Shown here piece after piece: positions 27,688-64,000 of a stretch of 64,000 bases of DNA (position 1 is its first letter; each line of letters begins with the position of its first letter). The stretch comes from Malacoraja senta (taxonomy: Eukaryota): positions 1,674,001 through 1,738,000 of the forward strand of contig CM075977.1 of NCBI GenBank assembly GCA_038087875.1, given 5' to 3'. The position numbers and the translations under genes were made by a program. Below the pieces are notes generated by a model. The model was given only the letters and a program-made list of their open reading frames with translations. It was not told the DNA's origin and ran no database searches.

Positions 27688-27992
27688 TTATTGGTTCTTC
27701 TTTGCTGTGCTTGAAGATGTGTGACGCCATTTAGAAATGCTCCTTGCGAATCGTCTAATTCCAGGTGACCTGACCTCAACCTCTTCTGATTCCTCCTCCT
27801 CTCCATCGAAAGGATGATCCGGTTCCACAGGATGAGGCTCTGGGTAGGAGGGTTGGGAGTATGGGTTTGGGTAGGGGTAGGGCCCATGGTACACGTACGG
27901 ATCTTGCTCATCGTAAGGGTCATAAGTTTGGTAGGAGCGTGGAGGCAATTGTACTACGGGGATGTCTTGATTAGTTGGATCATTGTATCCAC
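27688..27992 (-). CDS. COL14A1: COL14A1 long NC1 terminal exon, (G)[23 protein letters not shown]...[32 protein letters not shown]
   Basis: AAG acceptor at 27994-27993, upstream CTAAC branch-like motif and 103-nt AG-free zone, frame continuous to TAA. RSPGI.RF resembles the chicken collagen XIV NC1 heparin-binding segment as remembered. Confidence 0.85.
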
Positions 27993-28905: not shown

Positions 28906-28931
28906 TCAATAATTGGTGTAAACATCTTGAG
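28906..28931 (-). CDS. COL14A1: Candidate alternative short NC1 terminal exon, (A)QDVYTNY*
   Basis: AAG acceptor preceded by a pyrimidine-rich tract and a 149-nt AG-free zone; in phase with the upstream exon. Confidence 0.5.
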
Positions 28932-29149
28932 CTTTAAATTTGAGCCGGAATAGTTGGGATTGGTATGGAAGAGAAGATAAGGAAAAACAGAAACCCATTT
29001 AACAGTCAGTATAAAAAAAACACAAACACAAGCAAGCAGAAGGCAGAATTATAAACGACACATTTGTTTTGAAACAAGCAGCCTAAGGGATGATATTTTT
29101 TTATTTTCGCATTTTCAATAGCATTGCCTCAATCTTGTGCTAAAGTGGA

Positions 29150-29994: not shown

Positions 29995-30150
29995 CTCCAA
30001 CATTGTAGCCAGCACATGAAGAAGAGTCGCAGTAACCTGATGGGCCAGGCTGTCCTCTTGGTCCAGAGGATCCAGTACGTCCCAAGCTGCCTTGCCGCCC
30101 TGGGGGACCTGGTGGTCCTTGGCTCCCACTCCGGCCCTCCCCCTGAGGGC
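29995..30150 (-). CDS. COL14A1: COL14A1 COL1/NC1 exon, 156 bp, [11 protein letters not shown]...[17 protein letters not shown]
   Basis: CAG/GTAGG, phase 1-1; FACIT C-X4-C motif (GYCDSSSC). Confidence 0.95.
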
Positions 30151-37192: not shown

Positions 37193-37228
37193 CCTTGGGC
37201 CCCTCTCTCCTTTCAGACCCTGAGCACC
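37193..37228 (-). CDS. COL14A1: COL14A1 COL2 exon, 36 bp, GAQGLKGERGPR
   Basis: CAG/GTAAGT, Gly-X-Y. Confidence 0.93.
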
Positions 37229-39128
37229 CTGCGATAAAATTAAAAGTAGATGAAACAGTTGAAATAAAAATGTACAAAGTTCAGAAACAACAGTTACTTC
37301 AAATCTGCGTCAAGGAAGCAACCATTCTGCCTGGCTAGTCTGTGCTGATTTCTCTGCTTCTCTTGTACCTCCTCCTGCCTCTGCTCAATTTGTGATGAAC
37401 CTGCTGTTCCTTTCACCCTTGTGGACCTACTCTCTCCTGACACAAGTTGCCTTTGTCGACTGACACAAGGGAGATTCCATACATTATCTAAAACAACGTA
37501 CTTAACGGTCCTCCATTATGAGCAACTGGATTACAGAAACGGCAATGAATATCTTGCTGGGTATGTCGAAATCTTCTAAAAAAGAAATCCAACCCACAAA
37601 CAAATGGAATGTGGAGGGCCCTGTAAGATTCCAAAGCAGATCACATCCTATTAGATACATGAAACCTCGTAGCTCTGACCAAAAAATTCAATATTTGAAC
37701 ACAAATTTCCAATGCTCTCTGCTTTATAACTGGCCCCAATGCTCTATGTTTACTTGGGGAGCAAGAGCCTTCTGTGGCTGGTAACCCAAGATTATCCTCA
37801 CTAGGTTCCCATCATAGGTATCAGAAAATCAAAACACATTCAATCATTGGTGTCCAACGTCTCCAACTTGCAAGAAAGCACCGATGAAGAGATAGCATAA
37901 TAGTGCAGTGGGTAGTACTGTTGTCACGCAGCTCCAACAACTAGTTCAATCCTGACCTCGGGTGCTATCTGTGTGGAGCTTGAAAGTTCTCCCTGTTGCT
38001 GCATAGGTTTCCTCCCACATCTCAAACATGTGCTGGTAGGTTAACTGGCCACTGGAACTTAATGTGGCGTAGTTAAGTCTCAAAATAATTAAAAGGGGAG
38101 TCGATGGCATATGAGATGTTAAAGCCCATATTTTCATTAGAGGTGAAGTCAAACTGATTTCTGTTCCTTAATCGCTTGTTATTCCATACACAGGAAGGCA
38201 CCGTTTACTGTCAGAACCACAATATCAACTAAATGCAGTAATTCAATGGCTTCTTGAAATGCAGTTCTGATGGATTCCAATCTGTGACCGTTCTCATCTC
38301 CCAATCAGGCTACTTAATTATCTAAAATCCTCACTGGTGATCAACTCTGTGACATATAACCTGTCCCCATGAAGAAAAACAAGCATTTTCCAGCAAATTT
38401 ATGCTCAACAGGAACTCTTTCACCGACTCCTCCAAGAAGCTTACAACTTTGTCAAGTTACTTTCTTTGTAATGGAATAATTCCTTTCAGTGATTGAAATG
38501 AATAGGTTGTGTCCACTGTCTAATTGCAAAAGCTTACTCTAATTCAGCATCTAACTAACAGAGAAACAATAACTTCAAGAAAACTTTTGGCCGGAACTAT
38601 TGAGAGTTAGGAAATGCCAGAGATGTCAAGTATTTTGTTAAGTGTAATTAACTGAGGGACGTTTTTTGTTTGGTTTGTGAAGTAGGCCTCCTGGGCAGAA
38701 TCTGGAAGCTCATTCATAGTCCTTTAACTACACAACAAATCTCATGAGTGGTTTATTCATTCTTGAATGCATTGGTGCATCAAGACATTTGGAATTGAAT
38801 TGTTAAGAACACTGTTTTACATTCCAAATAGAACATTAGCAACAGGTGCCAATTGGAGAGCAGAGATACCAAAAAAAAATCATCCTGTGTGTTCACTAAA
38901 CATTCAAAAGTCACAATATATGGGCAATGAACTTGGCTTCTGAAACTTGGTCCTCTTGAATTCCATAAATGGACTATGAGAACCCACCAGAAGCCTGCTC
39001 TGAACAGGAAGACTACCTACTCACTCTGTTGGCTGAAGAAGAGAGCAGAACCCTGGCTTCCCCGCGGGCAGAATAGTCAATGGTGGACATATTCAAGGTT
39101 AGATGAGCTGGGGCCATGAATTCACTCT

Positions 39129-39435
39129 TTTAGTTTAGTTTAGAGATACAACATGGAAACAGGCCCTTCAGCACAACGAGTCCACGCTGACCAGCTATCC
39201 CCTTACACTAGCACTATCTTACACACAAGGAACAATTTATAATTTTTTTTACCGAAGTTAAATTAACCTACATACCTGTATGTCTTTGGCGTGTAGGAGG
39301 AAACAAACATCCGGGGGAAACCCACGCGGTCACAAGGAAAACATACAAACTCCGTACAGACAGCACCTGGAGTCAGGATGGAACCCAGGTTGCTGACGTA
39401 ACGCAACGACTCTACCGCTGCACCACCACGCCGCC
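39129..39435 (-). mobile_element. HE1-like V-SINE
   Basis: Reverse complement of the 21554 family with (TTTAG)n tail. Confidence 0.82.
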
Positions 39436-39699
39436 ACTCTTGGAATACTAACTTTTCCAAGCGCAACCGGAAAATGGCGAAACTGTTTCAAGAAAATTCC
39501 TACAAAGAGGACACACAATCACTGGTCTAGACTCCCATGAATTGAAGATTAATCACCAGATGATTTCTAAACTAAAATATCCAGAGCATTGGAGTGAAAT
39601 TGTGTACATTCATCTTCCTACAATGCTTGTGTTTCCTCGTTATAGAAGCTGTGGAGGGTGGGGAGGCAGGGATCATGGGGATGGGTGTGGCAGCAATAT

Positions 39700-40895
39700 G
39701 GGGCAAAGCAGCCGGTGACAACAGGTCATGTGATGAATACAACCAATTCCAATATATGCCAGAATGGGGTATCACCAAACCGCCAGGGAACCTATGCAAG
39801 GATTTTGTTTGTGGATATTAGCTCTGCATTCAACACCATTGTGCCAAAGCTACTACGCTCCAAACTCTCCCAGCTGACTGTGCCTGAACCCCTCTGTCAG
39901 TGGATCATTAACTTCCTGTCAGACAGGAAGCAGCATGTGAGGCTGGGAAATCACATCTCGGACCCGCAGACCCTCAGCATAGGAGCACCGCAAAGCTGCG
40001 TACTCTCCCCTCTCCTTTACTCTCTCCACACCAACGACTGCACCTCCACAGGCTCTTCTGTCAAGCTTCTCAAGTTTGCGGACGACACAACCCTGATTGG
40101 ACTGATCCAGGATGGGGAGGAATCTGCCTACAGACAGGAAGTGACACCGCGGGCGTCCTGGTGCCATCGCAACAACCTGGAGCTCAATGTTCTTAAGACA
40201 GTGGAATTGATTGTAGACTTTAGGAGAGCTCCCTCTCTCCTCCCCCCCCACTCACCACCAACAACACCTCCATCATCTCCAGGGACCTTAAATGGGGGGC
40301 CACCATCGATTCTACAGTCAAAAAGGCCCAACAGAGGATGTACTTCCTGCAGCAGCTGAAAAAACACAATCTGCCACAGGCAATGATGGTCCAATTCTAA
40401 ACGGCCATCGTAGAGTCTGTCCTCTCCTTCTCCATCATGGTCTGGTTTGGTTCAGCCACCAAACACGACACCCGGAGGCTGCAGCGAATCGTCCGATCAG
40501 CTGAGAAGGTTGTTGGCTGCAACCTTCCCCCCATTGACGAACTGTACACTGCAAGGGCCAGGAAGAGAGCGGATAAGATCATCCCTGACCCCTCTCACCC
40601 TGGCCACCTTTGAAGCACTTCCCTCTGGAAGGCGACTCCGAACTGTCACAGCCAGACATAAAAACAGCTTTTTTCCACGAGCAGTATCTCTACTCAACAA
40701 CCAAAAGTCTGTAGCCTCCTTTTGTTCTGGTGTTTTATTTAATTCTTCACATGTTTAAATTATAATGTTTTATTTTTAATTGTCTACTGTATATCGTGTT
40801 GTTACTTGTGAGCAAAGCAGCAAGGCAAATTCCTTGTATGCATACATATTTGTAAAATGTAATAACATTTATTAATTTAAATTCAATTCAATTAG
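39700..40895 (+). mobile_element. Rex1/Babar-clade LINE, 5'-truncated RT
   Basis: YARILFVDISSAFNTI, GAPQSCVLSPLLY and KFADDT; AT-rich tail. Confidence 0.9.
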
Positions 40896-41275
40896 TTGCA
40901 TTTTTTCCTTGAAGCCCATACAAAAGCTAGATTCATCCAAATGTAAAATGCCAAATAAACTACCCTGACAACATCATAGATGGAATTACTTAATGATTCT
41001 TGACATCCACAGCATTGTGTAGTTGATGTTGAATTGAACATCTGTGAATCTACTGCTATGATTATCCAGTCAGAACAAAAAACTAGCATCTGCACATCTG
41101 TTTCCGGCTGCAAATATTCATAAGCTGGCCTGACTGTCACAACACATTCCTTCTGCCAGGCCTTCTGCGCACCGCTGAAGTAAGAAATTGATTCTCTACC
41201 TCAGTTTTCATCTCGTTTCTGTTGAAGAATGCATTTTTCATTTCCAGAGATACAACCTGTTAATATTCTACTTAC

Positions 41276-41347
41276 GGGAGGTCCGATGTCTCCCTGGGAA
41301 CCGGGACTTCCTGCAGCTCCAGGGGAACCAGGGACTCCTGGACTTCC
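41276..41347 (-). CDS. COL14A1: COL14A1 COL2 exon, 72 bp, GSPGVPGSPGAAGSPGSQGDIGPP
   Basis: CAG/GTAAGT, Gly-X-Y. Confidence 0.94.
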
Positions 41348-44300
41348 CTGTGAAGTCATTCAATGCAATGTTAATTCCACAGCACAGATGCACAAACTGC
41401 TCTAAGCATACTGACTGAGACAGATTTGGGACTTGAAAAGACCTCGCATCAAAATGTGCTGCCTCACAGGGGAAAGGAAACGAGCATTTAAATTTGCTAC
41501 GAGCAGGGAAACTGTAGGATTTTAGAGCAAACTCTGCCACAGGCTCCATTTGAACTCTCATTTTCCATTTAATCCATCATAAACTGAAAATATGGTAAAA
41601 TAATCCCAAAAATAAAAATGTTAAAATAAAACGAACCCTTTGTTTTACATTAATATTAAATATTGAAAAATACATTTTCTCATTAATAAATGGTGGTTGC
41701 ACTAAGCAACCACACAGCACTTTGTATTTGTGCTGTGTGGTGTGAATAATAGTGCGGAGGAGTCATTCAAGCCTGACAAGAAATATTTTTTAATAACCAG
41801 GGATTTAATTTGTGATTGTCAACCTGTATAACATATTGATAAAGGAGGTAGTGATTAAATTTACACATGTCTCCTCATACAGTGAACATACCACACAGAC
41901 ATTGGTGCTTTAAGCTCTTAGCATCCTTTTGAAAAAATGTCACGGAACTGACGGGGGGATGCAGTTGTTAATATTTATTATTTATAAATGTTCGTTGTCA
42001 GGTCTTGTCTGCATTATGTCTGCATTATTAACAATACATCTTTGGAATTGCAAGAGATCACAGAATAAGATTTCAGATCTGCAAATATATTACAAGTGAA
42101 TATCATGGATGAATATGAATAAGCATGAAAAACAACATAAAGACCAATAAACAGAGCATATAATATAAATAAACAAACACAAGCAAAGCCAACCTATAAA
42201 ACATGGAGGATTGCTTCCAAGTTCTTTGAACGAAACGACAAAGCTGTCTTCAATTAAAGCGGTTTTAAAAGAGTTGCGCAAATTGTACCTCCAGATCTTT
42301 TATAACGCCTGGAAAATGCAAATTGAAACCACAGCCATAAGTGCGACTGTAGTTCCTTCCCTTTCCTCAGCATCTATTGTGACAAAGTTACTGCATTTCC
42401 AAAAATGTTAGCATTGTTCACAAAGGTTAACTCTTGGAAGCTTCAGCTTCCAGTGACAACAGATAAAAATTAACTTTCTGTCATTTGCAGAATTAGGAAT
42501 CTGCTTTCTATTAACTTAGCTCAGAACGCAGATGAGATGAAATTTCAAAGGTGCCTTATATTTTTGTGAACCAACTATTTAGATTCACATTCAGAAGGGG
42601 CTTGGACATAGCAAATGCACCAACTTTAATGCAATAATGTAATAGGCTACTCAATACATCAGTCAGCTCTAACATCTTGCAGGGGAAGATTGATCAGCCC
42701 GTGTTAGCCTGGCAGAAAGGGTGCAAGTTTTGGTCAATTGTTCTGGGACAGGTTATTTGCAGGATCCATGCTATCTGCAGGAACAGCTAAGTTTGGTAAT
42801 TGGTTATCATTGCTGTAACTTAAATAGAGCCATCATTATTTTTAAATGGGACTGGCTGCCTTTGGCTGCCTGTCAAGGTTAATATAACGGAGTTTGCCTT
42901 CGGTCAGGATTATAGAGTGAAACAGCACGGAAACAGGCCCTTCAGCCAAACTCCACGTTGACCAAAAGACCCAAGCTATTCACGTTTTCCCATTTGCCCG
43001 TGTTTGACCCGTATCCATCCCTCTAAACTGTTCTTATCTGTGAACCTGCCAAATGTCTTTAAACATTGTTATTGCACCTGCCTCAACTACTTCCTTTGGC
43101 ATTTCATTCCATGTACATACCACTATCTGTATAAAAAATGTTGCCCCTTATTCCTATTAAACCTTTCCCGTCTCACTTTAAACCTATGGCCTCTAGATCT
43201 TGATTTGTTGGTTTATCTTCTCAATTTAGATTCTCAAAAAATACCTTGAGGTATTTCACTTATAATCTGCTTCTGAGTAACTGCAGAAAATATCTGGCTG
43301 ATTTTTAATTACAAATTTTAGTATAACAAAATTCTACGTACATTTTCTTCCCCTTTTTGCTCTTTGAAAGGTGGTGGAAGTAGATTCAATAGTAGCTTTT
43401 GCAGGGAACTACACATATACTAAAAAAACAAGCAGGTGCAGGGGTTTGGTAAAAAGGGAATATTAGGTGTGAGTGGAGAGCATTTTCAAATAGCTAGAAT
43501 AAGCCTGATGGGCTGACTGGCTTTCATCCTTGCTGTGTGATCCTGCAATGATAAAGGGTGGTAAATGCAACAAAAGATACGGGGGGAAATGAAGTCTACA
43601 TGTTTATTCTACTCTGTGAAAATATTTCAGTTGTAAATTAAATGGGCGAGCTCACAGGAAATTGTGTGTGGCTTTATTCACATCTTTTCTGATCCAGGAT
43701 GTTATGGTTTGAACAATGAAAGCATTTTTTAAAGGATGGTAGTTTATAGTATCACCTTGAGGAAAACATCAAAGCCCAATAGATTTACACAAATATTCAG
43801 TGTTGTTATTAAAGCACGCTGGTTGTGTCAAAACCAGATGAGTTGTTTTTTCAAAGAGATCCTCCATGCTCTGTTATTATATATACATTAAATGCAGAGG
43901 AAATTAAATTAGCTTCTTCACATAGTCACATTCAGCTGGGTAAAGCAGGGCATTAGACTGAGCAGGTCTTTAAACCAGCGTTAATGCTGAACAATGCTCA
44001 TTGTCAGTTTACTTGCCTCTCATTTCTACTCCTGGGCAACAAATATACTCTACATTTAATCTGTTGTCAGGAAATTAATTTTGGTTTGGGTTCCAGAAAG
44101 AAATATGGGGAATCTCCACTGTAACAAAAACATGAAGTGCAGGAAGCAATTATCATTCTCCATTGGCCAGTCTCTAAACTTCAGGGTGACACAAAAGACT
44201 GCTGATGTTGGAATCTGAAGCAGAAAAACAAACTGCTGGAGGAACTAGTCCAGAGGAAGAGTCGTGACCTGACACCTTGACTGTCCATTTCCCTCCACAG

Positions 44301-45589
44301 ATGTTGCCTGATCCACTGAGTTCCACCAGCAGCTTGTTTCTTTACACTCAACTGGAAGAGATGTGATTGTGTGATCAGGATTGCAAATGTAGAGCTCTGC
44401 ACCTCTTAACAGGTCTTTTGAACTTGTTTCCGTTTGTTCCACATTCCAGCATCTGCAGTCTTTTTTGTTTTCCTACTCACTGTGGGAGGTCAATTTGACC
44501 GTGAACACCAGTGTGAAATAGAATTTCAGCCGGTCAGCTTCCACTGACTTTACATTCTTTGAGTAATGCCATGTGATGCCAGGTGTGGAGGTACCAGGTT
44601 CAGAGATTACCTGTCAATGAACGGTGCCACTGTATTCCATTAGGAAGCATGTGGGGAAATACAAGTTCATGCATTAAGCCAAACAAGCAATGTTGGTAAA
44701 TAAAGGCCAAAATCAACTTTTAATCTGTATTAGAATGAGCAATAGGGGATCTGAAGCTGATAAATGAAGTAACATCCTACTTTGTGTATAACTGTCAAGT
44801 ACCATAATCGGACATGTTAGCAATTGCTTCATGTACAGTTGGTGTTATTTAGCCCAACCATTCTGTCGCCTTGCCAACTACAATTTATTTCCAAATTTTT
44901 AATATATTTTCTTCATGTATTTGCCAGATTTGGGTCGTCACCTCAACAGATTTTTGAGCAATTGTTTGTGAGCAATCTATGCGATTGTACATTCCTGCCC
45001 ATCACACTGATTATGCCATTCAGCTATGGAGTTGCTACTTTCAGATGTGGCACGGTGCTTGGTGGCCAAGGTCCATTCAAGGAAAGTAAAGTAGGAGATG
45101 CTGAGAAGGGTGTAAAAGAGACCACTCCTGCGGTAAATATTCAAGAAATGAGCTGAAGAAATGAGGGTTGCCGTTCCAGAGAATTACATACCCGGAATAA
45201 CAAGGGGGAGGAAAGCAGGAAACACCTCGAGTTTCAGATCTTTGGGATCTATAAAGATGAATTATGACATGAGTCTGGTCAATCTTACGTCTCAATTATT
45301 GGTCTAAGGTAGATAGACTGAATCCAGTAAACATCAAGGCAGAGTGAACATGGGTGCAGTTGGCCTGACCCATGAGTTTGGAAGCAGCACAGTTTCTTAC
45401 TAATTCAACTTTATTTTTCCATGAAATGCTAATGTAATAGATGCTGCGTCAAAGAATGACTAACAATAGCCAAACAATGCTAAACACTATTATTCTCTTA
45501 TTTCAGAGTGGACACTTTAGACAGCATCTCCAACAATGAATTTCCAAGAGAAAGAGTAAATTTTACTCAAATCAAGTAGTTTTGTCTCA

Positions 45590-46115
45590 TCCCCCAACCC
45601 TTCCAATTAAATTGTAGTCCTCCCATTTCTGTCCATTTTCCCATATCCCCCGTTATCCATTGCCATCCCCTTCCCCTTATGGTTCCATTACTTATTACCC
45701 ACACCTTTCACCCACCAAACCCCCCACCCTCATCTGGTTCCATCTTCACCTCTCCACTAAAGCTTCCCATTAGCACCTTGCTTAATGCATTCCTGCACTG
45801 GTAGCCCTTGTGTCCCCACTTGTCACCCACCAACCTTGTCTCCACTTTCACCCTACACTTCCCCCACTTGGCTCTATCTGCCTACTTGCTCCCACCTATA
45901 GCGTACCCTACTTCTATCTGCTAATGGCCACCTCCCCCCCCTGCCGGCCCCAATATCACCCACCCCCTCTCCTCTATATAGACTTTCCCCTTACCATTCT
46001 CAGGTCTTAATCCCAAACATCAACATTTCCTTTCCACCCTCAAGTGCAGCTCCAACCACTGAGTTTCTCCAGCAGTTTCTTTGCTCCAGATTTCAGTTTC
46101 TGCAGTCTCATGTAT
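45590..46115 (+). mobile_element. Old Penelope-derived copy with C/T-rich leader
   Basis: Degenerate family 3' end (ccactgagtttctccagc...tctgcagtc). Confidence 0.45.
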
Positions 46116-46878
46116 CCAACAAACAACGGATCAACTTTGTACAAACGTATTTTAAGACATATGGTTCTCAGGGAATATTTCTGAAGTGAGACCGGTGGAA
46201 TCTGTTTATTCATTGGTGAGTTATGTTCATCTCTGGCAGGGCCAGCATTTATTGCCCTTTGCTAATTGCCTGCTGAGCAGGTAGTGGCAAACTGGTGCAT
46301 TGAACTATTAGCGCTGGAACTAATACTAAGGCACCCTTTGAACAGGCATTGCATGAGCTCAGGAAAAGAGAACATGAACAGACAGGTCAGATATAATGAG
46401 GGTGGTAATAAAACCATGAAATGGATTGCCCAAAGAAACAGATGATGTGGGAAAGTTGAAGGATAATTAGAGCAAGTATTGATAGTGATGGACTACGAAG
46501 GGATATTGTTTTTTGAGACAAGATAGACCAATATTTATGGGGAGTCCTGGTATAATATTGGAAATAAATGAGTACAAGAATTTGTGGCGTACAAATAGCC
46601 ATGTCTACATTAAAGAGGTATGGCAGAATCTCAAGTGTTATCAGAACATTTCTCTGCTTATAAAAAACATATGCCTCAGTGTTGATTGCTTTTCATGATT
46701 TGAAATGAAAGTTAGTTCACCAGAAGCAGACACAATCTGAACAGTAGCAATCCCCAAGATAGATGACCTGGTACTAGATCAGATACAAAGTACTGTGTGG
46801 GACATACTGGTTGGAGAAGGTGCAGCCAATTCTGGGGATTTTTTGGTATCATTCCTTAGCTACACAAAACAAACTTAC

Positions 46879-46932
46879 CCTCCTACCTGGAAACCCAGAT
46901 GGCCCAAGAGGACCCTCCATACCTTTTCGACC
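46879..46932 (-). CDS. COL14A1: Additional 54-bp Gly-X-Y exon GRKGMEGPLGPSGFPGRR (candidate alternative or mutually exclusive exon)
   Basis: TTTTTCAG acceptor, GTAAGT donor, six perfect triplets, phase 0; 67-nt intron to the preceding exon. Confidence 0.82.
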
Positions 46933-46999
46933 CTGAAAAATGGACATTGTTAAATCTTTGTGTCTTACTACAGTATAGCAGACATGCAAATGTACTCAC

Positions 47000-47053
47000 C
47001 ATCGGCCCAGGTGAGCCTGGTAGCCCTGAAGGTCCATCTTTACCCACAGAACC
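47000..47053 (-). CDS. COL14A1: COL14A1 COL2 exon, 54 bp, GSVGKDGPSGLPGSPGPM
   Basis: CAG/GTGAGT; GKDG motif shared with collagens XII and XIV. Confidence 0.93.
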
Positions 47054-47654
47054 CTGGATCAAAAGTTGATTACACAAGTCATTGAGTGATTAAAACAAGA
47101 TAGGGTGTTCTTTTGCAAACATAAACTTGTGCACATAAATATGTTTGTACCAATCGCTTCAGTTGCAGCTAAAGTGGCTTGTGAAAACAATGACGTCATT
47201 TTATGCTGTAATGTTTGAAATGTGGCAGCCAGCTTCTGCCCAGTAACCCCACCCCCTCCCCCCATAGAATCAGTGTGATAAGGACCAGTTTGTCTCTTTG
47301 TAATGGTTGTTAGAGGGATAAATATTGGTCCCATGACATCATGCATTATACCTTTTTCTTTGAAATATTGCCTTGGGATAATTTACTCACACTTGGAAGG
47401 GAAGGTATTGTTTCAAATCTGATGAAAGATGGCACTTTCAATTTTGCAGCACTCCCTCTGGTTCTGTGGCGAGACTTGAACTCATTTATCAGGAATTCAA
47501 CTTCATGGTTGGCAATCCCCAGGGTACTTACTGTTTATTAAGTTTAACAGAGGGAGCATTTTGGGACCAAAAATCAAGGCCTCCATTTTCCAACCTTGCA
47601 TTCTTCATCAAGAGTGCAGATCTGTGTAACCTTTAGTGCCTAGCTTTCAACCTA

Positions 47655-47872
47655 TCATAGTCATAGAGCTTGGAAACAGGCCCTTCGACCCAACTTGCCA
47701 ACATCGGCCAACATGTCCCATCTACACTAATCCCACCTGCCTGTGTTTCGTCCATGTGCCTCTAAACCAATCCTATCCATGTACCTATTTAATTGTTTCT
47801 TAAACATTGCAAAAGTCCCTGCCTCAACTACCTCCTCTGGCAGCTCGTTCCTTATACCCACCACCCTTTGTG
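47655..47872 (-). mobile_element. CR1 3' fragment
   Basis: Same subfamily as 24625, 42910 and 56740. Confidence 0.75.
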
Positions 47873-48610
47873 TCACATTGCATTACATTACATTGTGTAA
47901 AGTTTCCAAAAGTTATCCATAGACATGAGCTGTAAGGCAATAATCTACTTAAATCTCGTCAGGTGGATGGATGCCAATCCCATCTTCACAAAAGTAACTG
48001 TATCTGAAGGCTAAGTGCTGTGAATCTTGAAGCAATGGCGGTGCTGATTGATATGGGACGTAGTGGAGATGGAGGCCAATTGAATTCTATGGAAGCCTGT
48101 CAGATCAAAATAGCCATCAAATTCAGTTGCCTAATCAATATTTTTTTTAAATCAGGAAAAATAAATGTTCATGGGATTCAATCAGGGAAGCATCAGTAAA
48201 GAACTACAACAATCAGCAATCAGTTTTATGCTCCATCCAAAGTTCTTTTCCAATCATGACCAAAGAATAAAGGGTAGCTGATTCACCATTGCCTATTTGA
48301 TGCTTCCTCCAAAGGAAATTAACCTCCTTAGTTCATAGTCCTCATGGAGAATAGTGTTCATTGGTTTCAATAGAGGGAATATTTTGGGATCTTCTAAATT
48401 ATGGATCCTAACTCTCAATGGTAAATTCCAGTCATGCAGGATGGAGATTCTTGAAGCTTCATGCTATTATAACCCGTCTACACACCTCCACCTCCTATCT
48501 CAGGTGTGTTCTAATGCTGACTCTTAAAGAGAAGTGGTCCTAAAGGAGCTTAACACAGCAAAACCCATCGTCAGCCTGAGAGCATTCCAAGTCTGTTTCT
48601 TAAACCTTAC

Positions 48611-48664
48611 CCTTTGACCTGGTGGCCCATCTCGTCCCGAGAGTCCTCGAGGACCCGACAGACC
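48611..48664 (-). CDS. COL14A1: COL14A1 COL2 exon, 54 bp, GLSGPRGLSGRDGPPGQR
   Basis: CAG/GTAAGG; GRDG.PGQR matches collagen XIV. Confidence 0.94.
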
Positions 48665-49251
48665 CTGGATAAAGAGAACAATTTGGAATTAGACAAAAAT
48701 AAAAATATTCCTGTCATTCTATTGTGCCCTTCGCACCCCTTAGGAATATTCCATGTAGCTTGACATCCAGAGAGGTATTTTTATTTTCCATCGAGCTGCT
48801 GCAGTAATGTAGGAAGCTCTTAGCCATTTGTGGAAGTTTGTCCTGCACAATGTACTATCAGCAAGACAATCTGCATTGGATTACGCGATAATTTGTAAAC
48901 TAGTACAGATGAGTTCCCTCTGCCCTGGTTGAAACTGAGCGATCAGTTGCCAGGGATTCTGCCTGCCAGCGCAGACAAAGCTTCAATTTAATGATTCAAT
49001 CCCAAGGTAGCACTTCCCGCAGTGCCCAGTCACTCAGTACCTCAGACAGCCATGCTATTTATTTGATCACTGGATGCGGACACATCTGGCAGTGCAAGTC
49101 GTTACAGTCCATCACTGACTGCTCTTGACAGAGCTATGAGACAATTGTCAACCACATTGGTGTGTCCAGCATATACCATGTTTCTGTTCTTAATTATTGC
49201 CCTGGAGACCAGTGCTTATTCAGAGATGAGGGAGGGATGCACTTTTTTCTA

Positions 49252-49372
49252 GTGTCTGAAGAAGGGTCTTGACCCGAAATGTTACCTATTCCTTTTCTGC
49301 CTGACCGGCTGAGTTACTCCAGCATTTTGTGTTTATCTTGGGTGTAAACCAGCATCTGCACTTCCTTCCTAA
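49252..49372 (+). mobile_element. Penelope-derived element with hammerhead core at 49256
   Basis: CTGAAGAAGGGTCTTGACCCGAAATGTTACC. Confidence 0.7.
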
Positions 49373-49767
49373 AACTTTTTTGATCCTCACTTGGATTCAG
49401 CAAGATTCTGGCTCCTGGATAGGTACAACCTAAGCCTACGGAATACTACCCACACAAAGCATCTACCAGCTGCGGTGCACTTTTAATAATAAATCTAAAG
49501 AACTCAAAGTGAAGAAAATACAACAGCTTAACAAGACTGGACAAGCAATATTTCCCATCTGCCTGAGCGTCGCCTGAAGCAATGGAACTCAACAATAACG
49601 GTTCCAATGCACTGTAATTCTTATTGCTGTCTTATCAAATTCTAGCAGAAAATCGCAAGTTTAAATCACAAATTTGCAAAAATATACGATGTAAAAGGGA
49701 GTAACAAATTCCTTGGAGTAATAACCATTTGAACTGCAGAATGATTCGCAGAATATTCAATTCCTAC

Positions 49768-49821
49768 CTGGTGACCACCGGGGCCACTCTGTCCTTTCTC
49801 ACCCTTTTCACCAGCGCTCCC
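49768..49821 (-). CDS. COL14A1: COL14A1 COL2 exon, 54 bp, GSAGEKGEKGQSGPGGHQ
   Basis: CAG/GTAGGA, phase 0, Gly-X-Y. Confidence 0.93.
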
Positions 49822-50931
49822 CTGTCGGAATTAAAATGACACAATTCAGACATCAACCCTCTGCTTTGTTCGCCGACATTGATGGGAGGATTTCCTCCCT
49901 TCATTGTGCTTAGTGAAGTTGTGAAAGTGATTACAAAGGGTGATTTATAGTTTCCATCTGTGCAGCAAAACTCAGTAATAACAACCAGCTCTAGTGGAAA
50001 GAGGCAAAGAAAAGAAATAATGTGGAGGAGATTAAGTTTATCCAAAACTGATGACTCCAGATTATCCTGCACCATCCACGCTACTGTAAGGAAGAGAATT
50101 CCCATGGTGTAAAGTGGAGCTGCTACAACCCCAATGTTATACGAGTTAAATTCACTGTGACCCTGATTCCCAGCTACCCCCTCCCAGAGACTAATCTCAT
50201 GTTCAATTAGAAAATTGGCCTCAAGTTAAGACTCTACATGTTTTAACATCTTTGAACTTGAAGGCTCCAAGTTGGTGCTGGAAATGTGGCGACACTTGTG
50301 TACTGCTTCAGTGTGATCTATTTTTACACTCTTATACATAAGTATGATTGTGCCTATGTATAGAAAAAAATGTACAGAACTGTATGCAAAAAAGTAATTT
50401 CACTGTACCCAAGTACATGTGACAATAAAGTACCATTGAACCATTGAATTAAACATGAGCGAAGCATTCAAAGCTTTCTCCCAGCAGTCCCCAGGTTACA
50501 ACAGGCTTCCGCTTCTGAGAACGTCATTGTTCCCTCTGGGACATAACTGCTCGTAACCCAAACTGGAAATGCAAGAGAGGATCACAGCTGTGACAGGAGA
50601 GCGAGCAGGTGCAGGAAGAGCGGCCGCCAGCCGGCCTCACTGACTCGTGAGTGAGTGAGTGAGTGTGTTCAACGACCCAGCCCCTCATTATTGGGGCTTG
50701 GGGTGGGGAGAGACGGCATTCGGAAATGCCCTGCTCCAACCTGGCAGAAGATGCCTGAAGCCCCGCAGTGACTGAAAAGTCCATCCCCATCCATCCCACC
50801 AGAGCCCCGAACGCTCGCTCGTATGTGCAGCGTTTCCATCAGTCAGACATTTGTAACTCAGAGGATCTGCAGTAATTTCCTGATAATTTCAGACAACGGT
50901 TAAAGCTCCCTGCAGGGAGTGAACAGCTCAC

Positions 50932-51027
50932 CGGTAGTCCTTGAATGGATTGTCCGCTCGGTCCCTGGGGTCCAGGCTGACCCTGCGGACCCGGCAGGCC
51001 GATCACTCCCCTCTGACCATCAGGTCC
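50932..51027 (-). CDS. COL14A1: COL14A1 COL2 exon, 96 bp, [32 protein letters not shown] (contains the COL2 imperfection)
   Basis: CAG/GTGAG boundaries; GPSG.SIQG.P interruption as in collagen XIV. Confidence 0.95.
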
Positions 51028-51189
51028 CTGTCAGCAAACAAACAGAGAGTAGCAGGCATCTCTTCACACGGAAGTGACGTTACAGAGTTGCTGAAGTTCA
51101 ACATGTAGGCAAACACATCACAACATGACACTGCTGCGACAAGAGCATAGACTGAGATCTGGATACAAAATCCCACTGTCATTTTACCA

Positions 51190-51800
51190 GTAATTTAGGG
51201 GAAGTGTGAGGTTGGGTGGGATTGGGGGAAGGAGGGAGACCAGGAGATGGGTGAGGTTGGTGGTATCGAGGGTTGGGATCAGGAGATGGGCAAGGTTAGT
51301 GATGTCGAGGAATAGGACTGAGAAGATGGGCAAGGTTGGTGGGATCAAGGGATGGGACCAGGAAATGGGGGGGATTGGTGGTACCAGGGGGAGGGATTGC
51401 GGGCGGGGCATTGGGTGAATAAAAGGAAGGGATCAGTGGAAGGATGTTGAGTGGCACCAGGGAAGGGGTGAAGTTAGTGGCATCGAAGGAAAGGCGGTTG
51501 GGTGGGATTGAGGGAGGGATGTTGGGTGGGAAAAGGAGAGGAATATTGGAAGTGAACTGGGGAAAGGTGTGGAGCATAACCGAGGGAGGGATGAGGTTGA
51601 TAAGATTGAGGGAAGAGTTGGTTGGATGGGATGGGAGGGGGGGGGATACGGGGTGGTTGGCAGTGATCGGGGGAGGTGTTAGATGGCATCGGGGAAGTGG
51701 TAAGGTTGAGAGATCAGGGGAGAGGCAACATTGTGTGGAATCAGGAAGGGAAGAAGTTGAGTGTGGTTGGGTGGGGTGGTTTGGTGGCACTAGGGGAATG
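51190..51800. repeat. G/purine-rich low-complexity tract
   Basis: Dense GGG/GGGA runs and degenerate GGTTGGTGGGATC-like units. Confidence 0.7.
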
Positions 51801-51972
51801 GCTGAAGTAAGATGTTGGAGAAACTGGGTCTTTCCCTTGTAGGTGGGATGTGGATCTGCAGCAATAAAACTATGTTCGCACTGAACTTGAAATGGTAATG
51901 ATTATGTTCAATAAAGTAAAAATAAATGCATTTCCTTGGTTAGTTTAATAAACGTGTGGTGGAAGCTCTTAC

Positions 51973-52026
51973 CCTTGGACCTTGTTCTCCTCTCACACCT
52001 CTTTGGCCTCGTAAACCCGCGTTACC
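51973..52026 (-). CDS. COL14A1: COL14A1 COL2 exon, 54 bp, GNAGLRGQRGVRGEQGPR
   Basis: Canonical 54-bp Gly-X-Y exon with CAG/GTAAG. Confidence 0.95.
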
Positions 52027-52314
52027 CTGTAGAACAGACATTCATGGAAGAGCACTGTGTTAAATGTGAATCACAAAGGGCAAGATCTAATCATTCAATC
52101 CAAATGTCAAACAGGGCCATTGTTCTCAGTTCCTGATGCAACTTCATGCACTTGATGGAGATGCTGCCTGACTATTTGGCTATTAGCATCCTCATTACTC
52201 TTACAAACTCTTGTTAACACCCTGCTCCCAGGTGGGTATCAAGGCACATCCCATCAGTGCTGAGACACCCAGCAGCTACAGAATACTGCTCCAAGGAAGT
52301 TACATTGTAATCAA

Positions 52315-52545
52315 GTTTAGTTTAGAAATGCAGCATGGACACAGACCCATCGGCCCACTGAGTCCACGCTAGCCATCCACATAGTTCTGTTATCCCACCT
52401 TCTCGCCCACTCTCTACACACTGGGGGCAATTTACCGTGGCCGTTTAGCCTACAACCATGCACATTCCATATAAACAGCACCCAAGGTCAGGATCGAACC
52501 TAGGTCCCTCGTGCTGTGAGGCAGCAGCTCTATTGGCTGCACCAG
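52315..52545 (-). mobile_element. HE1-like V-SINE with internal deletion
   Basis: Head and tail similar to the 39129 copy. Confidence 0.7.
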
Positions 52546-53401
52546 TATTCCGACTTAAATGTTGGAACCATCATGGCAGAAGCATGATCAGAAAAGAGAT
52601 ATTTTTAAACAAAATTAACCATCTAGATACATGCTCCAGTGAACTGCACCCACCTCTCTTCACCACTCCTATCTGAAGTCTGTCTTGAATTCCCCAATGG
52701 ATATTGAGTAACCATTATGAATATTTGGGGCCCAATTCTGTCACTGATCCCAGGAGTCCACTGGAGTACTAGGAGGCCAATAGGAACACCTGTACAACTG
52801 GAACATTTGGAGGCTGTTTTCTTGCTGAGGTTCAATGTTACAGCAAGCTCCCCACTCCCCATCAACAACCTGCCCAACATTTTATTGTTCCATGAGCCCC
52901 AATGCCTGACACTTTGTTTCAACCAGGTTACCGATTTTCTTTGTCCCTCTCAGCATTTTTGCAATATTCACAACAACTTTCAGGTTCTGACTGAGGAGAA
53001 TGGAAACTCCAAGCACAGGGTTTCTTCGTTTGAATACCTGAATCATATCTTCCATTAACCTCCTCTGCTCTAAGGAGGGAACAACTCCAGCTTCACCCAG
53101 TGTCTCCACAGAACTGATCTAACCTAATTTCTCAAACTATTCTCCTGTGCCCCTTCTCCAAGGCTTTAACATCTTTCCCCTGGGGTGGGGCCCGTGAATA
53201 GGATACAACCCATTTATACAGGTTTAACATCCTTCTTTAGTAGAGTCCTCATATCAAACTCAAGAAACCCTGATGCTACATTACCAACAATGAGAAGTTG
53301 CAGAAACACAGAGGAGATGCTACCTGTTTTAACAAACAGAAGGTATCACCAGACTTCAATGTTTTCTTCCAGTAATCCAGTTTCAAACTAAACCCTCTTA
53401 C

Positions 53402-53488
53402 CGGGGGACCCAGGGGTCCAGGAGGTCCTTTACTGTCTTGGGAACAAGTGCAGGCATGAGGAAGAGCTGGGCAATTGGCTTCATCTCT
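53402..53488 (-). CDS. COL14A1: COL14A1 exon, 87 bp, [29 protein letters not shown] (NC3/COL2 junction)
   Basis: CAG/GTAAG boundaries, cysteine cluster followed by Gly-X-Y. Confidence 0.95.
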
Positions 53489-56580: not shown

Positions 56581-58675
56581 TAAGGTACAGTGAAATTCAG
56601 ATTGCCATACGGCCATACCGATAAAGAGCAACAAAACACCCAAATAAATGTTTAACATGAACATCCACCACAGCGACTCCCCCATATTCCTCACTGCTTC
56701 CCTACTCTGCCCAGCTGACAGACGCATTTAAACTTTTCATGTAGATTCATAGTTAAACAGCACAACAATAGGCCCTTCATCCAACTTCTCTAAGCCAAAC
56801 AAGATGCTTTCCTAAGCTGGTCCCATTTGCCTGCATTTGGCCTACTTCCCTCTAAACCTTTCCTGTCCATGAACCTGCCAAAATATCTTTCAAACATAGG
56901 AATTGTACCTGCCTGTAACACCTCCTCTGGCAGCTTGCTCCACACAATCATTTTTTGTACTCTCTTCAAATTGATCACCTATGCTCCAGAAATGTATCCC
57001 TAAACCTCTCCTCTTTACAAATAGCTTTCCACAAAATAGTTTCACTATGTCTCCTGCCCCTCTACAGGAATACATTCATTCTTGTGTGCATGTTGGAAAC
57101 CATAACAGTATCGTGAACTCATTCCATTGCGTGAGGCTTTATGAATACATGGGTGCTTTAATGAGCTGGGAATGTTGTTCCAATGCTGGTGGTCCTGCTG
57201 CATTCTGTAAGCTCATTGTCCAGAGCACGGGTCAACCTCAGACAGTGCTTGGGGAATGGGGGGTGGACAGAAGTTCACAGCTGCAGTCCACACACCTGCT
57301 GCAAGAGAGCCCTTGGAGGCTGCTTAGCTCCAGCGCCATCCTCCCCCTTAATGAATGGAAATAGCATGCAAAACGCTATTGTAAACTGGTGAATGGAAGC
57401 CTTTACAATTCTAGTACAAGCTTGGCTTTTATATTGTTGATTTACAGCACCAAAGTCAAAAGGCAATTTACAGTAAGTTCACATAAAACACTGTTAAGAT
57501 GTTAGGTATCACTTGGGGGCACTGGATGAAGGCTTTAGGGAGTGAGCAGGGTAGACCCAACTCTAACAAAATGTCAACTTTGTTTCTCTTTCCACAGATT
57601 CTGTCTAACCTGATAAATATTTCCACCATTGTCTGTGTTTTTCAAACCTGTCAACGCCTGCTGTTATAGGAAAAATTGGCATATTTAAAGATCAGGTCTC
57701 ATTAAGGCATGAAAATGACACTTGAACAACAGTACATGAAGCACTCAACTTCCAATCATTCCAGGGTTGACAATAAGGGAGCAGTAACTCAACAATCAAT
57801 GTTAAAGATTTAGAACAAATAACAGGATCCCCTTGCAGAGAGATATGGAACTGGAACTGTAATCAGTTTAGCTGATGATACAGGAATTATTCAAATTTAG
57901 ATTGTCTAGGCAGAAGTAGGATGCAGAACCAAGGTGTGTCTATGGAATTAGGACTATTTGCCCATGTAACTGTTAATTGGCAATGTGGGATTAGGTGGGC
58001 TGAATGGCCCTTTCCACACTGCAAGCAAGAATGCACTTTTTCCCCCAAAACAAAACTTCTACTCATGCAATGATTTTACTGAGTGAGGCAAATTGGCCCA
58101 AATTACCTCACGAGAGCCATGCCACAGAATGTGACACAAAGCTACCTCAGGAGCTACGAGTAAGATGATTGCAACTTTATCAAAGGGGCAGAAGAAGGCT
58201 TGCATTTCCAGAACAATCAATGAAGTGCTCTTAGGATAGAGCTACTGATCATAAGTAAATGCAAGGAGTCAAGACATTTACAGCAGGCTTCCCCATACAA
58301 AGCACTTTGGCTGCAGCCAAATAATCTTTTCCTTAGAAGTGACATTAGTTTAGGTGATCATAATACCTGACAGGAGGAAAGAGAGGGGTCTGTAAGGTAA
58401 ATCTGAGGGAGGACATTTCTAATCCTGATTGTGTCTGTGAAGACATGTCACCAATGGTGGAATTATTACATTTGGGAATGATGCAAAAGCCAGACTTGGA
58501 GGTGCTCAGATATCTCAGAAGACAGGAAGGATTATAGGTCTGGGAGAAATTACAGTTGGATGGGGAATTTGAAAGTAAGAATTAGAATTTTAATACAGGA
58601 CAAGAATATTAGCTATCAACATATGAATCGCACAGACGGTACATGGAGAAATATCTTCCTTTGCTCAGTACTTAC

Positions 58676-63525: not shown

Positions 63526-64000
63526 CTATTGGCAATGAATACGGAGCAATATTACAGAGACTTGCAGGCCATTCGGCCCCGCTGCTGCATATGTGAAAGA
63601 ACCTGAACTTGCTTGGCCTTTCGCCGAGGGTTACGCCCTCCTTGCACCTTCTGTTCCTGGTCTGTAAGGGTGCCAGTTAAACCCCTGTGCATAAGAAATA
63701 CAAGCAACAACAAACCACGTCACCTTTTGCACTTGCCTCTCCATTCGATGTCATAGGTAATCTTGATTCTTTTCCATTCCTTCAATTTCTGATACCCATG
63801 AAAATCAGGCTCTGGAATGAGGATCAGAGATTCACAAATTCTCTCCTGCTCCCAGTTCAAGGACCTGTCCATATCCTGAAACTGTGCCCCAAGTTCAAGA
63901 CCCAGCCTTAGAAAACAACCTCTCAGTATGTAAACTGTGAAAATTCTCAGTCTTCCACATAACAGTGAGGTCACCTCACTGAAGCTCCACAGCACATCGG

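Follow-up and report, generated by a model that had tools for sequence, protein, structure and literature searches.

The window, that is, the whole stretch of 64,000 nucleotides analysed here, contains part of a FACIT collagen gene on its minus strand. When collagen XIV of Syngnathus (P0033, by name collagen alpha-1(XIV)) was mapped onto it by tblastn, the match extended over positions 27690 to 63525 and comprised the end of the TSPN domain, COL2, NC2, COL1 and NC1; the remainder of the gene lies upstream of position 64000. The non-collagenous exons show 59-71% identity to the Syngnathus protein. The layout is that of collagen XIV: the TSPN end, a CxxxxxxCxC junction, a COL2 domain with one imperfection, an NC2 domain containing QVCEQLIQSH, a COL1 domain ending in GYC...C, and an NC1 domain of the XIV type. 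The 53-residue TSPN exon (63525-63367), used as query in an exhaustive HMMER search, retrieved collagen XIV, XX and XII proteins. The genome includes three TSPN-type FACIT loci in total; as the other two, located on C2 and C6, match collagens XII and XX, respectively, the gene in the window is, judging from its sequence, the orthologue of collagen XIV (COL14A1-type FACIT).

In the P0033 mapping, the TSPN exon is followed on the minus strand by exons at 58753-58676 and 53488-53402, the latter encoding the NC3/COL2 junction. The whole COL2 triple-helical domain, delimited by this mapping and by a Gly-X-Y scan, spans positions 37193 to 53428. It continues with exons at 52026-51973, 51027-50932, which encodes the conserved imperfection GQSIQG, and 49821-49768. 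These are followed by the constitutive 54-nt exon 5 (48664-48611; GLSGPRGLSGRDGPPGQR), the two exons under study (A and B), the constitutive 72-nt exon 8 (41347-41276) and the last COL2 exon, of 36 nt (37228-37193). Two exons (35305-35234 and 33539-33351) lead from NC2 into COL1, and two more lie 3′ of them (30684-30604 and 30151-29995). The NC1 exon, which matches the XIV-type NC1, runs from 27953 to a stop codon near 27690; this long exon is preceded by a phase-1 donor at 29995. Positions 28906-29082 show stop codons at short distance in all three frames.

Exons A and B emerged from inspection of the minus strand and a scan of every frame for Gly-X-Y runs. Exon A (47053-47000; GSVGKDGPSGLPGSPGPM) and exon B (46932-46879; GRKGMEGPLGPSGFPGRR) are both 54 nt long and of phase 0-0. 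Each encodes six perfect Gly-X-Y triplets, and they belong to the same slot of COL2, A being of the type found at this slot in collagens XIV and XII and B of the type found in collagen XX. The splice sites of exon A read ...gatccag| (acceptor) and |gtgagt (donor); those of exon B, ...atttttcag| and |gtaagt, conform to the consensus AG|G and AGG|GTAAGT. These observations confirm the preliminary description, which had noticed two phase-0 54-bp Gly-X-Y exons with good splice sites separated by a 67-nt intron. It had further stated that the remaining introns measure at least about 450 nt, and in the gene model all of them are indeed at least 452 nt long. The COL2 coding exons measure 27 (collagenous part), 54, 96, 54, 54, 54 (A), 54 (B), 72 and 36 nt. 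The domain would therefore comprise 9+18+32+18+18+18+18+24+12 = 167 residues with both A and B, and 149 with one of them, the same counts as had been given before. The anticipated contrast between a neutral and an Arg/Lys-rich segment in the same register also holds, since the net charge is 0 for A and +3 for B at equal length. A and B are identical at 30/54 nucleotides, and the other 54-nt COL2 exons at 21-28/54, these sequences being short and biased towards Gly and Pro. A possible integrin-type GFOGER motif in B was rejected, as B reads GFPGRR and lacks the Glu.

The A-B intron (46999-46933, minus strand) begins with a GTGAGT donor and has a short pyrimidine run ahead of its terminal CAG. 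Both of the elements reported for it were located as claimed. The hexamer TGCATG occupies intron positions 12-17 (46988-46983); by our estimate, about 1.5% of 67-nt sequences would contain one by chance. The sole match to yUnAy is TTAAC (46953-46949), whose A at 46950 is intron position 50, placed 50 nt from the donor of A and 17 nt from the acceptor. Upstream of exon A, at a distance of about 290 nt, another TGCATG occupies 47340-47345 (minus strand). Predicted RNA structure over A, the intron and B was no better than that of shuffled sequences (z = -0.75), and a docking or selector structure is hence unsupported.

RNA evidence came from assembled contigs and unitigs, rather than read counts, of runs X25, X9 and X1 over positions 41250-47100; a raw-read polyA RNA run (X31) showed zero coverage of the collagen exons, covering intronic repeats only, and provided no junction counts. 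A joint at 41346/46999, equivalent to the junction 47000>41347, was present in X25 (depth 12.3), X9 (depth 91.4, in a contig of 3093 nt) and X1 (depth 84.1). As this joint is GT..AG on the minus strand, exon A is spliced to exon 8 and B is skipped. X25 contains two unitigs of 110 nt, which match exon A at depth 12.3 and exon B at depth 4.3, respectively. Each aligns at record positions 29-84 with zero mismatches, and the B unitig accounts for about 26% of the summed depth of the two. Exon B also occurs in X1, in a contig of 427 nt composed of 26 unaligned letters, B from record position 28 and 339 nt of the downstream intron. This position is exactly that simulated for 27 nt of exon 5 followed by B and the retained downstream intron; the contig may be an unproductive intermediate. 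No contig with B was present among those of X9. Because B sits in RNA contigs with zero mismatches, its open frame is not due to chance. Of the two forms, A is the major and B the minor one, the evidence for the B form being assembled contigs that are fully informative in X25 and partially so in X1.

A de Bruijn unitig simulation (k=31) was then performed on the real exon sequences. The transcript set {5-A-8, 5-B-8} was the sole one to give two unitigs of 110 nt whose positions 30-83 are A or B; their length is 110 and not 114 nt because A and B share the initial GGT and the final G. Unitigs of 111 and 260 nt were obtained when B was a cassette exon, of 110 and 163 nt when A was the cassette, and of 83 and 84 nt when all three forms were present together. 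Addition of a form skipping both exons gave 108 and 110 nt, and addition of the unspliced short intron 82 and 84 nt. The depth bins of X25 point in the same direction. For the bin 41250-41445, the expected depth is (74 x 21.8 + 28 x 12.3 + 28 x 4.3)/196 = 10.60, and 10.6 was observed; it would be 9.99 if the 28-nt flank of B were not on exon 8. For the bin 46934-47100, 56 x 12.3/167 = 4.12 equals the observed 4.12, and the value would be 4.79 were the other flank of B on A. This other flank is therefore not on A, and since it shares at least 28 nt with the sequence preceding A, it corresponds to exon 5. We infer from the unitig geometry and these bins that the flank of 26-27 nt in each of the 110-nt unitigs is exon 5 sequence, and that the junctions of exon 5 with B and of B with exon 8 (B>41347) are used.

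Taken as a whole, the data make it probable that A and B are mutually exclusive exons of the COL2 helix of collagen XIV, as the preliminary description had proposed from the sequence; the joint of A with exon 8 in three runs and the twin unitigs of X25 support this reading. Among the junctions named there, 47000>41347 was directly observed, and 48611>46932 and 46879>41347 were obtained by inference only. Two other outcomes had been considered: a pseudoexon B present in no RNA and not conserved, and a constitutive extension dominated by 47000>46932. B is, as described, present in the contigs of two runs, and an A>B junction does not appear among the joints listed for the X25, X9 and X1 contigs. 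Nor do the unitig lengths give any sign of forms that include or skip both exons, with the proviso that contigs drop rare variants and that the bubble is complete in X25 only.

Several other features lie within the introns. Coverage of three segments (42912-42953, 43060-43190 and 44281-44340) is very deep in each of the four runs, reaching thousands in X9 and X1, and includes numerous variant letters and loose ends; these segments resemble parts of an abundant, transcribed interspersed repeat and not exons of the gene. An open frame of 201 codons on the minus strand (51299-51901), rich in Pro, Ser, Thr and Leu, is located in the intron between COL2 exons 2 and 3 and resembles low-complexity repeat DNA more than it does a coding region. 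The open-frame fragments at 47730-47882 and 56793-56978 (minus strand) are related to each other ("...EEVVEAGT.AMFK..L.RYMDR.GLE...") and are probably copies of one interspersed element, to which a direct repeat of 75% identity (43059-43130/47800-47871) also belongs.

The A/B slot was compared with that of other collagens of this group. The distance from the COL2 start to the NC2 motif VCEQL is 164 residues in 122/122 retrieved collagen XIV/XX proteins, and these proteins therefore have a single 18-residue slot. All teleost XIV proteins (100+) carry an A-type sequence in it, with the consensus GLPGKDGPxGRxGxxGxI; a B-type slot was found in none of them, nor in any other retrieved annotated XIV protein. 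All XX proteins are of the B type, e.g., GTRGLEGAIGPPGLPGPR or GMRGFEGTAGFPGPPGPR. The paralogues of the same genome follow this division. The collagen XII gene (G000:C2:103933867-103946984, plus strand) has a single exon at the slot, of the A type (GFPGKDGPIGPRGPQGPI), and the collagen XX gene (G000:C6:67650125-67658944, minus strand) has likewise a single exon, of the B type (GTRGLEGTIGPPGLPGTR). A single exon at this position, which the preliminary description had stated for mammalian collagens XII and XIV, is what the teleost XIV proteins and the genome's own XII contain. In both paralogues, the COL2 exons measure 54, 96, 54, 54, 54, 72 and 36 nt and include the two-residue imperfection, as in XIV, and teleost col14a1 shows the same COL2 exon pattern.

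Similarity was scored with BLOSUM62 over the non-Gly positions. Exon A scored 14.7 against the XIV slot and 7.0 against the XX slot, and exon B -5.6 and 18.0, respectively; the scores against other segments averaged at most about 2 for either exon. When the non-Gly residues of B were permuted, the match of B to the XX slot gave p = 0.004 and that to the XIV/XII slot 0.45, so that the resemblance of B to the collagen XX segment, previously noted, is borne out. At the nucleotide level, identity is 33/54 between B and XX, 33/54 between A and XII, and 30/54 between A and B, values low enough to exclude a recent transfer. The matching introns of the genome's XII and XX and of col14a1 from Prochilodus and Conger showed no trace of a lost partner exon. 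DNA runs of two other organism labels contained 15/15 sampled words of the 175-bp unit formed by A, the intron and B, the intron included; in a neighbouring 9.8-kb stretch, the fraction of words present was only 0.25-0.30. This hints at constraint on the unit, bearing in mind that the sampled words need not span every base and that the lineages are perhaps not independent.

Searches for the pair elsewhere gave the following results. The best 120 matches to the Syngnathus XIV region were all teleosts, and a profile search with the exons of the window gave 40 matches, all of them fragments from teleosts or from birds/reptiles; close relatives were not among them. A query with the 42-residue peptide of exon 5, B and exon 8 yielded 4 candidates, none of which scored, in a protein collection without fragments so short. 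A bird locus (L011) stops at COL2 exon 3, before the A/B slot. Short matches to P0077, P0042 and P0041 were set aside as uninformative, because they are genomic read-through frames. It is possible, albeit tentative, that the A/B pair is an ancient module predating the split of collagens XII, XIV and XX, from which XII and teleost XIV kept A and XX kept B, with both arms still in use in the XIV gene of the present lineage. If true, the ancestral pair would be a case of duplicates each fixing one arm of an alternative-splicing choice in a collagen helix.

Alternative explanations for exon B were weighed against mutually exclusive use. Were B a cassette exon, transcripts 5-A-8 and 5-A-B-8 would encode COL2 domains of 149 or 167 residues. 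Inclusion of both exons does stay in frame, and an intron of 67 nt is not strictly unspliceable. Such a transcript pair, however, places A within the long simulated unitig and B in that of 111 nt, and not in two of 110 nt as observed; the depth of X25 in the bin covering A is fully accounted for without a flank of the B unitig, and 122/122 homologues have one slot. We regard a cassette as quite improbable. It is more improbable still, to the point of being nearly negligible, that a different gene copy, allele or paralogue, and not alternative splicing, is the source of the B unitig. The organism labels of the RNA runs do differ from that of the best-matching DNA run, but the unitig equals exon B of the window at every position and has at least 27-29 nt on either side in common with the A form; besides, the genome's other two FACIT loci of the TSPN type, XII and XX, do not contain the B sequence.

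Somewhat less remote, though still unlikely, is the explanation that B is a weakly used pseudo-exon, a decaying relic spliced as noise, and that A is the sole functional form. The absence of B from the X9 contigs and from every retrieved annotated XIV protein agrees with it, and so does the retention of the downstream intron in the X1 contig. Against it, B keeps a perfect frame of 6 x Gly-X-Y between consensus splice sites, provides about a quarter of the unitig depth in X25, and substitutes exactly for A rather than being added to it. It resembles the collagen XX slot in its residues beyond what permutation yields, all sampled words of the 175-bp unit recur under two other species labels at a far higher rate than those of the neighbouring DNA, and the X1 indels, among those listed nearby, are confined to the intron.

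With A and B as mutually exclusive exons, each mRNA would contain exon 5, then A (major) or B (minor, at roughly one quarter of k-mer depth in X25), then exon 8. With one of the two per mRNA, COL2 would therefore stay at 149 residues and the Gly-X-Y register would be kept. The swap would turn an 18-residue stretch from neutral (net 0) to basic, adding +3 per chain and +9 per homotrimer. Splicing of an intron of about 67 nt is possible in vertebrates. Given the length of the A-B intron, any branch point serving the acceptor of B must lie within about 50 nt of the donor of A. The only candidate, TTAAC at +50, would bring U1 at the donor of A and U2 at the branch site of B close enough to crowd each other. 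U1 at A would then pair with exon 8 and U2 at B with exon 5, and poorly with one another. A steric threshold of about 50 nt between 5′ splice site and branch point has been proposed (PMC7969005). Steric exclusion is hence plausible but borderline, since the predicted branch A sits right on the threshold and not well under it. Nonsense-mediated decay is not the enforcer, because A and B are both 54 nt long and in phase. If Rbfox proteins act at this locus, the TGCATG could push the choice towards A. As for function, the charge swap could alter the surface of the collagenous arm, e.g., its binding to polyanions or glycosaminoglycans, which is speculation, and equal length would leave trimer assembly possible.

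Collagen XIV tunes the growth of collagen fibrils in skin, tendon and cornea, and to our knowledge its splice variants known so far are all outside the helix. With an either-or exon in its rigid COL2 arm, the collagen would exist as two molecules of equal length with surfaces nine charges apart per trimer, a simple handle for testing what the COL2 arm binds. The pair would also offer a small natural system in which to test how short the donor-to-branch distance can be in a vertebrate, and the A type of XII and XIV versus the B type of XX a testable example of alternative exons resolved into gene copies.

Exons 2/3 of alpha-tropomyosin are a steric-hindrance exon pair. In alpha-tropomyosin and OGDH, the branch point was experimentally mapped far from the acceptor and 25-41 nt from the donor, whereas the whole A-B intron measures 67 nt and its branch A is predicted at 50 nt, a borderline distance. 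Exons 4a/4b of OGDH resemble A and B in being adjacent alternative exons with a branch point near the upstream donor (PMC7969005). Within a triple helix, a mutually exclusive pair is known from exons 9/10 of C. elegans let-2, which encodes collagen IV alpha2 (PMC2119826). There, as for A and B, the alternative exons encode versions of one helix segment. Unlike the vertebrate FACIT considered here, let-2 is a nematode basement-membrane collagen. The main difference between its exons is an interruption of Gly-X-Y, and the choice between them changes during development, whereas A and B are uninterrupted and differ in charge. In the literature searched, whose coverage is incomplete, no description was found of an exclusive pair in collagen XIV or any FACIT.

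Among vertebrate relatives, COL20A1 has a 54-nt exon at the slot that shares with B the pattern G-x-[RK]-G-[LMF]-E-G...P-G-x-R, as seen at the XX slot of sharks, a bichir, a mammal-like sequence and the genome's own XX gene; it differs in that XX has one exon at the slot, with 33 of 54 nucleotides in common with B. Teleost col14a1a/b agree with the gene of the window in domain order, exon sizes, COL2 imperfection and the A-type "GxxGKDGP" slot, but in Prochilodus and Conger the intron after the A-type exon contains neither a B exon nor a relic of one. Human collagen XIV has the same canonical organisation as teleost col14a1a/b. Mutually exclusive exons internal to a helix and steric exclusion between neighbouring exons are both already known; what the pair proposed here would add to these systems is its occurrence in collagen XIV.
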